Sequence record: OU509535.1
Direction: 5' to 3' (one strand)
DNA length: 64,000 bases
Below, piece by piece: positions 1,416 to 46,366 of this stretch. A model generated the notes under the pieces. The model was not told the origin of the DNA. It saw only the letters and a program-made list of their open reading frames with translations, and did not search any database. Within the stretch, counting starts at the first letter, position 1; every line of letters starts with the position of its first letter. The position numbers were made by a program, and so were the translations under genes.

Positions 1416-1585
1416 AAAATATTTTTAAAAAAGAATATGATGGTGAAAGCCTTTGTGATATTCAACGAGATGTTGTTGAAGCATTCAGTACAGTATTCAA
1501 TCCAGAAATGATTGATATTCCAGTCGATGAATATGGATTCCAAGAAGGTACATTTGTTGTAAGTATTAAATGGAAGCCAGAATAA
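1412..1585 (+). CDS. Small hypothetical protein (57 aa, MKNIFKKEYDGESLCDIQ...)
   Basis: Translated by hand; ATGA overlap with the upstream stop and TAATG overlap with the next ORF. Confidence 0.6.
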   Translation: MKNIFKKEYDGESLCDIQRDVVEAFSTVFNPEMIDIPVDEYGFQEGTFVVSIKWKPE

Positions 1586-1713
1586 TGCGTGATCTTATTA
1601 TGTTCTTTTCTGCAATCATAGGACTATGTACTTATTATTTTTCCAATCATTATATTATAGCTATGGTATTTGCAATTATATATATTGCACTTTACAGTAC
1701 TGACGACGAATAA
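1585..1713 (+). CDS. Small hydrophobic protein (42 aa, MRDLIMFFSAIIGLC...)
   Basis: Translated by hand; coupled start; ends just before a terminator. Confidence 0.5.
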   Translation: MRDLIMFFSAIIGLCTYYFSNHYIIAMVFAIIYIALYSTDDE

Positions 1714-1735
1714 AAGCACCCCAGTGGTGCTTTTT
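1712..1735 (+). terminator. Rho-independent terminator
   Basis: AAAAGCACC-CCAGT-GGTGCTTTTT hairpin with U tract. Confidence 0.8.
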
Positions 1736-1770
1736 GTATTTGTACAAAATATAATCTAAGTGACTTTTTA

Positions 1771-1812
1771 TTGATTTAAATCAAGAATAAAATCACCTTT
1801 TAGTGATATAAT
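1771..1812 (+). promoter_or_regulatory. Class II FNR-type promoter of the nrdD operon
   Basis: Perfect TTGAT-TTAA-ATCAA (1771-1784) and extended -10 TGaTATAAT (1804-1812); box centre lies at -41.5 from the predicted +1 (about 1819). Confidence 0.8.
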
Positions 1813-1867
1813 ATGTTACGTAGCATTTAAATAAATCTACCACATAATAAAAAATCAAGGAAGAAAA

Positions 1868-3673
1868 ATGAATTCAAATAAATTATATGAAGATATTGAA
1901 AATTTTATTAATAATACAAATAAAGATATTACTACTGAAAATGCTAATAAAGATGCCAAAGTAGTTAATACACATAGAGATTTATTTGCTGGTATCCTTT
2001 CTAAACATTACGCCCAAGATACTATCCCAGAAGAATTTATTAAATGGCACAATGATGGTTATGGACACTGCCACGATTTAGATTACTGGATCTCACCATT
2101 AACAAATTGCTGCCTTATTAATTATCCAGATATGCTTAGAAATGGTTTTAAAATTGGTAGTGCTAACATTGAAGAACCAAAAAGTTTTTCTGTGGCTTGT
2201 ACGGTACTAACACAGATTGTGCAAGCGGTTGCAAGTTCACAATATGGTGGACAATCATTAGCTCACATTGACAAATATTTAGAACCATATGTTCAAATGT
2301 CATGGAATAAACTATTAGAAAAACAAAAGAAATATAATTTAAGTACCGAATTTATTGAAGACGAATTAAGAAAAGAAGTATATGATGGGTGTCAAACATT
2401 TTTATATCAATTAAACAGTACTGTGTCCGTGTCAGGCCAAACCCCTTTCATATCTATTAGTTTAGGTTTAAGTACTACGAAATTTGGACGTTTAATTACT
2501 GAACAATATTTAAAAGTTCATGAAAAAGGTTTAGGTAAAGATGGTATTACTCCAGTATTTCCGAAAGTTATTTTCTTTTTAGAAGATGGTATTAATGCTA
2601 ATAGTACTGATCCAAATTATGATTTAAAACAACAAGCATTACATTGTAGTTCTAAGAGAATTTATCCTGATTTCGTTAGTGTTACATTGAATAAAGAAAT
2701 CACAGGTAGTACTACTGAAGCTGTTACTCCAATGAGTTGTCGTTCATTCCTTTCCAAATGGATAAATGAAGATGGCGAAGAGCAATATAATGGCCGCTGC
2801 AATTTAGGGGTGGCATCGATCAACCTACCGTTAATTGCTCTTGAAAGTACGTCAGACGACGTTTTCTTTGACAAGTTACACCATCACATGGACATGGCAT
2901 ATCGCTTCTTATCGCTCCGTGTAGAGCGTTTAAAAGACACAAAAGCCCGACAGAATCCAGTACTGTACATGTACGGAGCCTTAGCTCGTTTAGATCCAGA
3001 TGAGACTATTGAGCAATTATTTTACAATGGAAGAAGTTCCATTAGTATTGGGTATGTTGGTTTATCTGAATGTTCTGAAATTCTTAAAGGAAAAATAGAC
3101 AAAGATTTTGGATTAAAAGTACTGAAATATATGCAAATGAAATGTAATCAATATAAAGAAGAAACTAATATCGCATATAGTTTATATGGAACACCAGCCG
3201 AAAGTTTGTGTTATAAATTTGCAAAAATTATTAATGAGAAATACCCCTCTGTATTGAATAGAGATTACATTAGTAATTCATTCCATTATCCAGTTCATTA
3301 TGATATTTCAATTTTCGATAAATTTGAATATGAAAGTTTATTTGGAAATATCAGTTCAGGTGGCAATATTAGTTATGTTGAAACCCCAAACCTTTCTAAT
3401 AATTTAAAAGCATTAGAAACAATAGTTGATTATGCTAGTACGAAAGTACAATATTTCGGCATAAATCAACCAGTGGATCACTGCTATAAATGTGGTCATG
3501 ATGGTCAGTTCAACGTAGATAAAAATGGATATAGTTGCCCGCATTGTGGTAATAATGATGAAAGTACTATATCAGTTATTAGACGTGTTTCAGGTTATCT
3601 TGGTGCACCAAATAGTCGCCCATTTAATAAGGGAAAACAAGCCGAAGTGATCGAAAGAATTCGTCATATGTAA
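1868..3673 (+). CDS. nrdD: Anaerobic (class III) ribonucleotide reductase large subunit
   Basis: 601 aa; TNCCL, PMSCRSF and GRCNLGV motifs, CxxC...CxxC zinc site, and the glycyl-radical motif RRVSGYL; no ATP cone, as in T4 NrdD. Confidence 0.97.
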   Translation: MNSNKLYEDIENFINNTNKDITTENANKDAKVVNTHRDLFAGILSKHYAQDTIPEEFIKWHNDGYGHCHDLDYWISPLTNCCLINYPDMLRNGFKIGSANIEEPKSFSVACTVLTQIVQAVASSQYGGQSLAHIDKYLEPYVQMSWNKLLEKQKKYNLSTEFIEDELRKEVYDGCQTFLYQLNSTVSVSGQTPFISISLGLSTTKFGRLITEQYLKVHEKGLGKDGITPVFPKVIFFLEDGINANSTDPNYDLKQQALHCSSKRIYPDFVSVTLNKEITGSTTEAVTPMSCRSFLSKWINEDGEEQYNGRCNLGVASINLPLIALESTSDDVFFDKLHHHMDMAYRFLSLRVERLKDTKARQNPVLYMYGALARLDPDETIEQLFYNGRSSISIGYVGLSECSEILKGKIDKDFGLKVLKYMQMKCNQYKEETNIAYSLYGTPAESLCYKFAKIINEKYPSVLNRDYISNSFHYPVHYDISIFDKFEYESLFGNISSGGNISYVETPNLSNNLKALETIVDYASTKVQYFGINQPVDHCYKCGHDGQFNVDKNGYSCPHCGNNDESTISVIRRVSGYLGAPNSRPFNKGKQAEVIERIRHM

Positions 3674-3746
3674 TCTATATAAAAACGACTAAATGAATAG
3701 TGATAATGTAGAATATAAATGAATTATCAAAAATAAGGAGTCAATT

Positions 3747-4109
3747 ATGACAATTAAAGCAAAACAAATTTTATCAGGCGAACATACTGGAACAATCTTT
3801 TTACACGATGATGAATATGCACGTATTTTAGTATCAAAAACATTTTCAGAAGATGATGAAGTATTATTCAGTACTTTTGAACATGAAGAAATGCGTGAAG
3901 TTGATATTCAAGAACAACCCAAAATTGAAGGCGGTCATCATTTAAATGTAAATGTATTATCACGTTCTCAATTAGAAGAAGCACAGAAATTTCCTGAAAA
4001 ATATCCTCAACTTACTATTCGTGTTTCTGGATATGCAGTTCGTTTTAATTCTCTTACGAAAGAGCAACAAAATGATGTAATTTCACGAACTTTCACTACT
4101 AAGTTCTAA
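3747..4109 (+). CDS. grcA: Autonomous glycyl radical cofactor (GrcA/YfiD-like)
   Basis: C-terminal half [10 protein letters not shown]...[35 protein letters not shown] is diagnostic. Confidence 0.93.
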
Positions 4110-4113
4110 TGTA

Positions 4114-4461
4114 ATGTTTTTTGAATATAATGATGAAAATATATATCCAATTGTGGTTAATAAGTACAAAGAACCATATGATGTATATATTGGAAGAGGT
4201 TCAAAATGGGGGAATCCATTCACTCACATAAAAAATCGTGATACGAAAGCTGAGTTTATTGTTAATACCAGAGAAGAATCTATTTCAAAATATAGAGAAT
4301 GGATATTTGATAAAATTGAAAACGGTGAAATTACCATTGATGAGTTACTAGAATTATCTGGTAAAAAATTAGGATGTTTTTGTAAGCCTAAATCATGTCA
4401 TGGTGATGTTCTTGTGGAAATAGTGAGTGCATTATTAGATGAATTATCAAACAATAATTAA
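4114..4461 (+). CDS. DUF4326-like protein
   Basis: YDVYIGRGSKWGNPF and LGCFCKPKSCHGDVL motifs. Confidence 0.8.
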   Translation: MFFEYNDENIYPIVVNKYKEPYDVYIGRGSKWGNPFTHIKNRDTKAEFIVNTREESISKYREWIFDKIENGEITIDELLELSGKKLGCFCKPKSCHGDVLVEIVSALLDELSNNN

Positions 4462-4909
4462 AGATGACTTAATAAATGGGGAGGGAGTTAGATGCTCCCT
4501 TTTTGTTTCGGGATGTTCAATGGGTTGTAAAAATTGCTACAATGAAAAAGCATGGGATTATAGAAGCGGTACTGAATTCGGTACTGAACAAGTTGAACTT
4601 ATACTAAACGAATTATCTAAATCTTATATATCAGGATTATCATTACTTGGTGGTGATCCACTTGCTCCAAAAAATTTCAGTACTATACTGGATTTGTGTA
4701 AGATTGTTAAAGAAAAATACCCAGACAAAAACATATGGTGTTGGTCTGGGTACACATTAGAAGAGATACAAAACAATCATGCAAAAGAAATATTACAGTA
4801 CTGTGATGTATTGGTTGATGGTAAATTCATTAATGAATTAAAAGATTTGTCGTTACCATACAGAGGTTCAATAAATCAACGTATATTAAGAAAAAATATA
4901 AATTATTAA
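4439..4909 (+). CDS. nrdG: Anaerobic RNR activase (radical SAM)
   Basis: NGEGVRCSLFVSGC, CxxxCxxC (CSMGCKNC), LLGGDPL, PYRGSINQR. Confidence 0.96.
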   Translation: MNYQTIIKDDLINGEGVRCSLFVSGCSMGCKNCYNEKAWDYRSGTEFGTEQVELILNELSKSYISGLSLLGGDPLAPKNFSTILDLCKIVKEKYPDKNIWCWSGYTLEEIQNNHAKEILQYCDVLVDGKFINELKDLSLPYRGSINQRILRKNINY

Positions 4910-4915
4910 AAAAAT

Positions 4916-4943
4916 AAAAAAGCCTCTTTTAAGAGGCTTTTTT
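4916..4943. terminator. Bidirectional terminator between convergent genes
   Basis: AAAAAAGCCTCTT-TT-AAGAGGCTTTTTT. Confidence 0.85.
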
Positions 4944-4944
4944 A

Positions 4945-7900
4945 TTATATAGATGTTGTGTTATTCAAATCATCAAATTTTTTTGATAAAATATCATATC
5001 TTCTACGTTGGTACGCAGCTTCAACAATTAAACATTCTTCCATTCTAAGCATATAAATTTCGCCAGCTTCTACAGCTTCCGTTAATTGAACCCCATTTTC
5101 ATCATATGTTTCACTTACTGCGGGCCATGATTCATAAGTTATTAATCCATATTTTGTCCAATCAAGACCAGCAGAAATTAATGCATCTCTAACTTGTTGT
5201 GCAATATACCCAACATGCCATCTAGCATCATCTTCACCTTTTAATGCAACAGCAGCTTTCATTTTCCACATTTGAAAATTAACAGAACCCCATGCGTCTA
5301 ACAATTCATCAGGTATATTTTGTATATCAATTTTATGAGTTTCATCTGATACAACAGTAACCGCGTTTTGTGTATATATATTTTGTATAGTTGAAGATGA
5401 TGAACCAATGTCATATGTAGCTGTTGTAGTTGGAATTATATTACCAGTAACTCTTAAATTTGTTCCTGCATTTATTGTTAATGAAGAAGATCCAGAACAA
5501 CTTATTGTACCAGTTACAGTTGTACCACCGTTATAATAAAATTCCAAACTTTTGCTACCAGCTCCTGAATTATATCCTAAACCAATTGAATATGTTGGTC
5601 TAAAAGCGTTAGCATAAACTACCCCAGAAAATGTTCCAGCAGTTGCTGTTAAATTATTAATAGAATAATCATTATAAAATGAATATGGAGAAATAGATGC
5701 CTGATTTAGAACTAACACATCACCTATATTACCCAAAACACCATATGAAACATATTGATACGAAATGGTACCGGATGAAGTTGTTAATCGTTTAAATAAT
5801 TCATATAATCCAGTAGCTGAAGTACTTGAACCCGATTCAATATATATTGGTATACCAACAGCTAAAAATTTAGCATTATCGGCTGATACAGTAAAAGTAG
5901 TCAAATTATTTGTTGTATCTACCGAGTTTATAGTAGCCAATATTGACACTTTATAACTAGATGGCAATGACATACCATCAGTAACCATTTTCGAAGTATT
6001 AGTATATCCTGATGTAATAGTAGTACTTATAACGTTATTAGATTTAGATTTATATGTGTGTACCCATGGGGCAATTAAATCACCACGTTTGAACAAACCA
6101 CCACCAATACTTCCATCTACTGCGGTATATTGTGATACCGTAGTTAAAATACTTGAAGCTGGGGATTCTGGTATATATGATTGTACACCATTTGGAAATA
6201 ATGGTATACCACCAGTATATGCTTCAACTGCTTTTATTATTATTGGGGTTGTTGATGGAACTGTAATAACTATACTACCATTTCTAGCATAACTGTAAAT
6301 CCCATTCCAAGCACTTAATCTTTTCTGAGAAAGCATCATCATTTTATAACCATTTCCAAAATTAACTACTTTTTCCGCAAATGATTTAACTAAAGCTGCA
6401 TCAGTATTTTGAGAACTTTCTTGTGATGCTGACGTTTGCCATGCAACTGCATTTTTAGTATCAAAATTATCAGATAAATCTTTATACCATATACACACCA
6501 TCGAACGAATCGACGGATTTCTCCAAGGAATGAAAACAGTACCAGAATTTATTTGTAATCCATAGGGATTAAACATTTCATTGGCATATGGACGATCACG
6601 TAAAGATTCCCAATCGGTATCAGTAGTCATGAAAATATTATATGTACCATATTTGAAATCATATCCACCATGATAAAATGCTCCTAAATCTCTAGCTGGT
6701 GCACCAATAGCATATGTTGTTTGTCCATTTGGTGTATCGTAATGAGTTGTACTACTTGGATATAGATAATCACCATTGTCAGAAATAGTTCCAAAACATT
6801 CTTTTTCAAATGTCACTTGGTTATAATCTAAAAAGTTATCTTTATATGTATTCATACAGTTCAATTGTAAACCTTGGAACCTACTTGCTTTACCATTGAA
6901 ACCCCATCTAGAGATGGTTATGAAATTATAATCCCATTCATTATATGTAGCATCGAAGTTATGTTTTTGAACAGTACTATAAACAGTACTTTTATTCGCA
7001 TTATATACCCACGATGCTGCTGGACCAATATAACAACCACTAGCATCGAACGACGTTCCTGTTATTACTGCTATATAATCTGGAATATCTCCAGAAATAT
7101 TATTTGCATGTCTCCAAGCTAAATTATTTATTATTTCACAGTTAGTTGCTGAAGACCAATCACATGCATTTCTGAATATTCCACGGCGACCTGATTCAAA
7201 TTTACATCCATGTAAATTAACACGGTTAAAATTACCAAATCGTGATGTTACACCTTCTGACACCATATAATCTAAAACATATTGATAATCTTTAATATTA
7301 TCATCAAAATTTAAATTATAGTCAGTTTTAAAAACAGTTTCAGTTATCCCAGATGGCATAAAAACACCACACCAGTTTCCATTTTTAGCTCTAGTACCAT
7401 ACATACTAACGCCTTCTGGATTTAGACATAATATTAATGCACCTGCTGAACTATCATCCGACATAGTTGTTATCGAATGATCTCCAATAAAAATACCACC
7501 ATATACAGCAGTATCTTGTAAACTTACAGTGCCCCAATAACTTTGTTTATTAACTGCTAACCATTTTTCTTTAATTTCATCATATCCATGACACAATCCA
7601 GACAGACGCTTACCAGTAGCTTTATAGGTGTATGATTTGCCAGCATAAATCATAAATCTGGATGCACCGAAATGATAATCAACTCCAGTTTTCCATTTTA
7701 TATGTATTTTACCAATTCTATATCTATTTGCTGGTACTGTTATTTGTAAACGTTCTCCACCTGAATAGGTTGATTCGTTATTACTTCCATATATTGCTAA
7801 TGGTATTAAAGATGTAATTCCATTTATTACTTCACCAATACAAACGAAATCATCAGTTGTTGTATCAGTGGCTTTACTATAGGTATATGAAATAGCACCA

Positions 7901-31583: not shown

Positions 31584-31631
31584 ACATTATGATATTATTA
31601 CATCATTCTAAATCCATTTAAAAATCTTTTG

Positions 31632-31660
31632 TTGACAAAGGATCTATTTTAAGTTAAAAT
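31632..31660 (+). promoter_or_regulatory. Sigma70-type early promoter
   Basis: TTGACA-17 nt-TAAAAT ahead of 31689. Confidence 0.75.
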
Positions 31661-31688
31661 ACAAAAATAACTATCAAGAGACTGAAAA

Positions 31689-32192
31689 ATGGCGAAATTT
31701 GATCGACTACCAAAAAAGTATACTTTTGTATTACATTTACTAAGAAGAAGTTCAGTACTAAAATCGTTAGTACCTGATGATAAATCAAGAAAAGAACTTA
31801 TTGAATGCATGTATGATATGTCCAGACATACATTATATAAATTATTAAAGGATTATAGTACTGATCCGTTTAATTCACGTTTTGAACTAAATTCTTCACC
31901 GAATTATACATCATTAGCATCCATTGATAAGTTTGAACTAAGAGACAAAACTAACAATATTCTTTTATGTATCAGCAACTATAATGGTAGTACCGAAAAA
32001 TACAATCCAAAGTATATCAAATGTAATGCACATATTAATGGAAAGTACATAAGTGATGTTTTAACTGAAAATGAAAAATTGTACTTTTTACGTTTACATG
32101 AAGATGTGCGTGTAATGATCAAAAACTTTGATGAATTGGAAAAATATCAGGAAATCAACGAAGTCAAAGATAAACTAAAAAGGTTATATTAA
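31689..32192 (+). CDS. Hypothetical protein
   Basis: 167 aa ORF after a sigma70 promoter; coupled to the next gene. Confidence 0.75.
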   Translation: MAKFDRLPKKYTFVLHLLRRSSVLKSLVPDDKSRKELIECMYDMSRHTLYKLLKDYSTDPFNSRFELNSSPNYTSLASIDKFELRDKTNNILLCISNYNGSTEKYNPKYIKCNAHINGKYISDVLTENEKLYFLRLHEDVRVMIKNFDELEKYQEINEVKDKLKRLY

Positions 32193-46280: not shown

Positions 46281-46296
46281 AACATTTTTTTTGGCA

Positions 46297-46326
46297 TTGA
46301 CAACATTACAGATTGTGTGTTATAAT
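46297..46326 (+). promoter_or_regulatory. Consensus sigma70 promoter
   Basis: TTGACA-18 nt-TATAAT. Confidence 0.8.
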
Positions 46327-46351
46327 AAAGGGACTTTAAGAGTCCCTTTTT
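46327..46351 (+). terminator. Terminator after the lysozyme gene
   Basis: AAAGGGACT-TTAAG-AGTCCCTTTTT. Confidence 0.8.
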
Positions 46352-46366
46352 CTATTTGGAAAATGT

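Follow-up and report, generated by a model that had tools for sequence, protein, structure and literature searches.

Oxygen destroys the class III ribonucleotide reductase (RNR), and the giant phages considered here, which encode this enzyme, carry an aerobic one as well. This raises the question of how expression of the oxygen-labile enzyme in a strictly lytic phage might be matched to the oxygen state of the host cell. The window analysed here is a stretch of 64,000 nucleotides from sequence record OU509535.1, corresponding to positions 124001-188000 of a genome of 347,546 bp with 32% G+C. Its first 5 kb match RaK2 (Alcyoneusvirus, 346 kb) at 96%, and the window is that of a RaK2-like Klebsiella jumbo phage. 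We propose that the leader of its class III RNR operon holds the answer in the form of a 14-bp palindrome, which is probably a selected site for the FNR protein of the host and would make transcription of nrdD, the grcA-like gene, the DUF4326 gene and nrdG dependent on anaerobiosis. The features of the leader and the operon, in the coordinates of the window, are the following.

1712..1738, plus strand: intrinsic terminator with a 9-bp stem and a T-run, closing the upstream gene block (terminator scan)
1740..1753, plus strand: weak FNR-like half-site TTGTA-N4-ATATA, centred 31 bp 5' of the main box, with a match in the left half only
1771..1784, no strand assigned: perfect FNR box TTGATTTAAATCAA (TTGAT-TTAA-ATCAA), predicted dimer site of host FNR (sequence and conservation)
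1804..1812, plus strand: extended -10 TGATATAAT (TGaTATAAT) of a putative class II sigma-70 promoter, P1, 22 nt past the box and without a -35
1818..1820, plus strand: predicted start of P1, placed from the -10 hexamer, which would set the box centre at -40.5 to -42.5
1828..1836, plus strand: TAAATAAAT, a T4-late-like element with TAAATA at 1828-1833 and a candidate second promoter, P2 (conservation)
1857..1863, plus strand: ribosome-binding site AAGGAAG, read from the sequence
1868..3673, plus strand: nrdD, class III (anaerobic, glycyl-radical) ribonucleotide reductase, 601 aa (Pfam NRDD, E=9.6e-168; Gly_radical)
3747..4109, plus strand: grcA-like glycyl-radical spare-part protein, 120 aa (Pfam Gly_radical, E=1.2e-16)
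4114..4461, plus strand: DUF4326 protein, 115 aa (Pfam PF14216, E=6.4e-25)
4439..4909, plus strand: nrdG, radical-SAM activase of NrdD, 156 aa (Pfam Fer4_12, E=4.2e-52; Radical_SAM)
4913..4946, no strand assigned: bidirectional terminator with a 15-bp stem, ending the operon (terminator scan)

The nrdD-grcA-nrdG module that the initial annotation had placed downstream of the palindrome is borne out by Pfam matches to NRDD, Gly_radical and Fer4_12/Radical_SAM, with the DUF4326 gene as a further member of the operon. The counterpart of nrdD in RaK2 is annotated as nrdD, and the grcA-like protein is 59% identical to E. coli GrcA. As the terminator at 1712-1738 closes the upstream block, the nrdD operon needs a promoter of its own; the next strong terminator along this strand is the one at 4913-4946. 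The Alcyoneus-, Asterius- and Munch-like phages keep a hairpin homologous to the first of these, likewise 5' of the box. When 1500-5000 was scanned against Rfam by E-value, terminator-like noise came up near 4900 and no leader RNA element. Within the operon, nrdD and the grcA-like gene are 73 nt apart, and in this gap lie CTAAATG at 3689-3695 and TATAAATG at 3714-3721, near-matches to a phage late motif that could represent an internal promoter.

The palindrome at 1771-1784 matches all ten specified positions of the FNR consensus TTGAT-N4-ATCAA, in agreement with the initial annotation, every feature of which lies where it had been placed. In the 64-kb window one perfect box is observed against 0.40 expected per 64 kb from shuffles, with at least one in 33 of 100 shuffled windows, and the whole 347,546-bp genome likewise has one against 2.45 +/- 1.49 expected under a first-order Markov simulation. 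Hence, a perfect FNR box somewhere in one AT-rich genome is not significant by itself, and the case for this one rests on its conservation. The combination of a box with TATAAT 22-23 nt further on is expected 0.017 times per genome strand in the Markov simulation, and here it precedes the one operon whose host counterparts are FNR-regulated.

To follow the box across relatives we gathered nrdD leaders from annotated phage records and 80 IMG/VR loci (retrieved by NrdD alignment, not selected on the box), and compared 17 distinct jumbo-phage leaders, with NrdD 64-100% identical, in an ungapped alignment anchored on the box. The annotated leaders come from phages of at least five host genera, namely Klebsiella, Escherichia, Salmonella, Cronobacter and Erwinia. 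Whether related jumbo phages conserve the box had been set beforehand as a check, and it is present in all 17 distinct nrdD leaders; every locus whose NrdD is at least 64% identical has it about 90-103 nt before the nrdD start. The groups that bear it are Alcyoneusvirus, Asteriusvirus, Mimasvirus GAP32, the Munch-like phages, fENko-Kae01 and Erwinia phage Hallingskeid. The left half-site is TTGAT in 17 of 17 and the right one ATCAA in 13 and GTCAA in four, so that pairwise identity among the leaders reaches 1.00 and 0.94 in the two halves against 0.40-0.53 in the neighbouring spacers. A half-site that stays invariant while its surroundings diverge speaks for a function under selection. The central N4 occurs as TTAA, ATAT, TTAG, ATAG, CTAG, CCAG and TTAT, a variation that is expected of a site read only through its half-sites. 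A CRP-dependent promoter (TGTGA-N6-TCACA) was rejected, as the discriminating position is T rather than G in 17 of 17 leaders, with TTGA/TCAA throughout. Also dropped was an inverted repeat ATCAC..GTGAT in the spacer (1792-1807), which is not conserved in the relatives. At the weak site at 1740-1753, a TTG exactly 31 nt upstream of the box start is kept in 12 of the 17 relatives; it may represent a second, degenerate half-site for FNR or be no more than the tail of the terminator.

Beyond this set, no usable box was seen at nrdD in T4-like loci (NrdD about 45% identical), T5-like and FelixO1-like phages or Aeromonas phage LA93P1, which makes the feature lineage-specific rather than universal to phage nrdD genes. 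That T4-like, T5-like and FelixO1-like phages do without it counts against the FNR reading. Boxes that lie 233-236 nt before the NrdD match in some T4-like loci were discarded as promoters, the one in L022 being inside an extended NrdD reading frame, and in three T4-like representatives there was no box upstream of the first candidate nrdD start. In rV5-like phages (L064:2907-3003 and L017) a box with one mismatch, TTGACTAAGATCAA, overlaps the stop codon of an upstream 316-aa ORF; TAAAAT comes 22 nt further on, and a terminator-like hairpin separates it from the ribosome-binding site of nrdD. This case is ambiguous and was left out of the support. By comparison, two unrelated GC-rich (56-57%) viral contigs that resemble Aeromonas phages and encode a bacterial-type nrdD-nrdG pair (L053:2920-2990 and L054:2900-2990) have, before nrdD, a terminator and a perfect FNR box, with TAACCT or TACCCT 22 nt past the box. 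Vibrio phage ICP1 (L100:844-890) has a perfect palindrome, TTGACACAAGTCAA, with two mismatches to the FNR consensus, 22 nt before a TATAAT that lacks a -35 and 78 nt before nrdD, and the same FNR logic may operate in this Vibrio cholerae phage. A scan of IMG/VR with the composite of a box, 43 nt and TAAATAWNT matched at least 116 loci; among the matches listed, eight are nrdD leaders and the rest are chance matches in AT-rich DNA.

The core promoter next to the box is of a kind that would suit an activator. The hexamer TATAAT occupies 1807-1812, leaving exactly 22 nt between it and the box, and the top -35 candidate at a 17-nt spacer, AGAATA, has two of six matches. The extended -10 had been described at 1804-1812 without a good -35; these coordinates are right, and a sigma-70 promoter scan lists none at the nrdD leader. 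Strong canonical sigma-70 promoters are found elsewhere in the window, one at 31600-31690 (TTGACA, 17 nt, TAAAAT) and another at 46290-46366 (TTGACA, 17 nt, TATAAT with TG), so that the missing -35 at nrdD is not the norm for this phage. With its -35 weak or absent, P1 would be expected to depend on an activator, with the caveat that the TGn extension could compensate; the TGn-TATAAT of this phage could fire without an activator, giving oxygen-independent basal expression. A start at 1819 would place the box centre (1777.5) at -41.5, as against -40.5 for A1818 and -42.5 for G1820. The earlier claim of a box at exactly -41.5 thus stands as arithmetic for a start at 1819, and its precision does not carry over to the relatives, where the spacing depends on the lineage, being 22 nt in some and 23 nt in others, and where the extended -10 is unconserved. 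At one of these two distances past the box, 15 of 17 relatives have a TAnnnT, which in ten is TATAAT. Asteriusvirus and Hallingskeid lack the TG extension and retain the box; in part of the GAP32-like group the -10 is degenerate, L019 and L079 being without TAnnnT.

This layout has a close counterpart in the host. The same 14-mer, TTGATTTAAATCAA, stands in the E. coli grcA (yfiD) promoter, also flanked by TTTTTA and followed after 22 nt by TATATA, and in the genomes of at least 37 enterobacterial species the exact 20-mer is found about 105-114 nt ahead of the coding match to GrcA. FNR site I of grcA, with its centre at -40.5, is a proven class II site; of 23 E. coli promoters activated by FNR, 19 have their site at -41.5 +/- 4 (PMC3688515). 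The class II geometry first proposed for the phage is supported in that box, 22 nt and hexamer equal the layout of the FNR-activated grcA promoter.

As to what reads the box, E. coli FNR was compared by tblastn with 50,697 phage records, and none of these jumbo phages had an FNR/CRP-type match. The sole match was a fragment in one Listeria phage, and a phage-encoded FNR/CRP protein was rejected at this sensitivity. With no such protein found in the phages themselves, the reader is most likely host FNR. The earlier suggestion that the module is wired to the oxygen sensor of the host is thus supported by conservation, by the grcA-like layout and by the lack of a phage FNR homologue in this search. 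Binding and activation by FNR, the positions of the starts and any response to oxygen are inferred.

The TAAATA at 1828 had been named as a rival start that would speak against the box. It is a start candidate that may not refute the box, and it proved to be its most conserved partner, being present in 17 of 17 leaders always exactly 43 nt past the box, with a conserved CA or CAC directly after it, while its distance to the ATG varies from 33 to 46 nt. In GAP32-like phages (L006:2420-2465, L010, L011, L016, L019, L079 and L081) a terminator hairpin (CCCC..GGGG and a T-run) lies between box and TAAATA and replaces the TATAAT of the other lineages, its T-run supplying a weak TATTTT or TATTAT, and the total spacing is still 43 nt. 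The local TTTAAATA agrees with the T4-type late promoter TATAAATA at six of eight positions. Genome-wide, [AC]TAAATA shows a sense bias 30-50 nt upstream of genes (36 versus 13). If TAAATA acts as a T4 late element, the candidate start would be near A1839, 6 nt past it, and the box centre would fall at -61.5, a class I position; the class I and class II readings are 20 bp, or two helical turns, apart. It is accordingly possible, though we think it doubtful, that FNR serves mainly or only as a class I activator of a TAAATA promoter, perhaps read by polymerase with a gp55-like sigma, and that the TATAAT at 1807 is secondary or incidental; this would not be exclusive of FNR control. The fixed 43 nt despite the variable distance to the ATG, the replacement of the intervening sequence by a hairpin and the CA at the expected start all favour such a role, as does the promoter-like distribution of the motif. 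Against it, TAAATA lacks the T at -7 needed by sigma-70, the base before it is T in this phage (C, G or T in relatives) rather than the enriched A or C, and we know of no activator-dependent T4-type late promoter. In the phage family, a late motif ATAAATA has been reported for CBB and GAP32 together with a gp55-like sigma (PMC5259590), in line with this role. Precedent comes from a class I site for FNR in E. coli, at about -60.5 (PMC3688515). Class I FNR promoters are rare (PMC3688515), which counts against such a role, as does the fact that the class II layout is itself kept in 15 of 17 leaders and copies the host grcA promoter. We therefore lean towards the class II route over class I action on TAAATA.

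Taken alone, the class II model offers no explanation for the invariant 43 nt to TAAATA. TAAATA may be a second, FNR-phased promoter at -61.5, and one box serving both starts would account for all of the conserved spacings. More specifically, and as a tentative idea that we rate as somewhat unlikely, the box could be phased for an early class II sigma-70 promoter and for a TAAATA promoter at which FNR at -61.5 would activate the gp55-like-sigma polymerase via alpha. The TGnTATAAT of this phage has a perfect hexamer, and extended -10 promoters can work without a -35, so the promoter might be essentially constitutive, with FNR at most modulating an operon that is not really oxygen-gated; we consider this unlikely, since Asteriusvirus and Hallingskeid lack the TG extension yet have the box, and since the invariant half-site in a diverged context points to a selected function. 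The palindrome might also be read by another protein, either a phage DNA-binding protein or another host factor of the CRP/FNR family, given that many jumbo-phage proteins are of unknown function and that a palindrome alone does not name its reader. We find this very unlikely in view of the exact match to the FNR consensus, the T in place of the G of CRP sites in 17 of 17, the negative tblastn search for FNR/CRP homologues in these phages, and the retention of the site across phages of five host genera, among which FNR is near-identical. That the 14-mer is the one of a proven host FNR site (grcA; PMC3688515) weighs against another reader as well. That the palindrome arose by chance in AT-rich DNA and was passed on without a function would fit the expectation of 2.45 boxes per genome and the 33 shuffled windows in 100; it is hardly credible beside invariant half-sites and a fixed spacing in 17 relatives with spacers 40-53% identical and the recurrence of the arrangement in the unrelated GC-rich contigs L053 and L054, and conservation already contradicts it.

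Returning to the preferred reading, in an anaerobic cell the [4Fe-4S] FNR dimer that the host already contains would bind the box and recruit host RNA polymerase to a promoter that has no -35. The likeliest route would be the class II sigma-70 one, through box, 22 nt and TATAAT to a start at about 1818-1820, with the box centre at about -41.5. In air FNR would be inactive, and the oxygen-labile enzyme set would be made little or not at all. With the TAAATA at 1828 two helical turns further downstream, FNR would also be in phase at -61.5 for a start near 1839, and one box may serve the two starts.

Control by FNR could be disturbed if the phage modifies RNA polymerase or DNA. Two GATC sites lie inside the box in ten of 17 relatives, and methylation has been reported for RaK2 DNA (PMC3622015). 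Separately, the window has 33 copies of an 8-bp palindrome, CAGTACTG (at, for example, 177, 553, 1695, 2416, 2958, 4796 ... 63974), where 0.53 would be expected; none of 100 shuffles reaches that count. Across the genome the palindrome is found in 50 of 230 upstream regions. It may be a repeat element, or a site for a methylase or a regulator.

Class II promoters activated by FNR are textbook matter. In the literature searched in full text, including papers on RaK2, CBB and phage RNRs, no phage nrd promoter is described as carrying an FNR site. With a host FNR site kept in its leader, a giant phage that is strictly lytic would be able to pick its RNR without encoding a sensor itself, namely by reading the iron-sulphur state of a host protein already in the cell. 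The two-promoter reading, if true, would mean that the host oxygen sensor gates a phage operon all through infection in cooperation with a phage sigma factor, of which we know no described example. Several of these phages are candidates for phage therapy, for which their behaviour in the anaerobic gut matters, and a review of phage RNRs asked for expression studies under different conditions (PMC3653736).

Several known systems may be set beside this leader. It resembles T4-type late promoters in having a TAAATA core about 40 nt 5' of the start codon and in coming from a phage family with a gp55-like sigma; it differs in that the element stands in fixed phase with a host activator site, to our knowledge not a feature of T4 late promoters. 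The host grcA promoter is alike in the 14-mer, the 22 nt to a TATA-type -10, the absence of a -35 and the glycyl-radical nature of the product. It differs in having a second, down-regulating FNR site at -93.5, to judge from the title of a paper cited in PMC3688515, where the phage has a weak half-site 31 bp upstream only; in addition, nrdD is the first gene behind the phage promoter and the grcA-like gene the second, and the spacer sequences are unrelated. The E. coli nrdDG operon likewise joins a class III RNR to its activase, and is itself FNR-controlled (PMC4009431) as well as repressed by NrdR. Its promoter has two FNR-like sites 31 bp apart, the distance also seen between the weak half-site and the main box of the phage; these host sites are imperfect and placed differently from that of the phage, and no homology between the two promoters was seen. 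It also has two NrdR boxes, against none in the phage leaders: taking a pair of 16-bp boxes about 31 bp apart in a promoter as the test for NrdR, a scan with the consensus acaCwAtATaTwGtgt recovered two boxes in the E. coli nrdD promoter (13/16, core 6/6) and no conserved box in the 17 leaders, and NrdR control of phage nrdD was rejected.

That phages carry sites for host sensor-regulators is already known, for example from cyanophages, in which pstS and other genes are under the host PhoBR system as judged by EMSA and expression data (PMC10976474). There, as is proposed here, a lytic phage carries a host-derived metabolic gene together with the binding site of a host sensor-regulator; the signal is phosphate rather than oxygen, and the regulator family and the hosts are others. 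If the present reading holds, stress-specific phage promoters for host regulators would extend from phosphate in marine cyanophages to oxygen in phages of gut enterobacteria.
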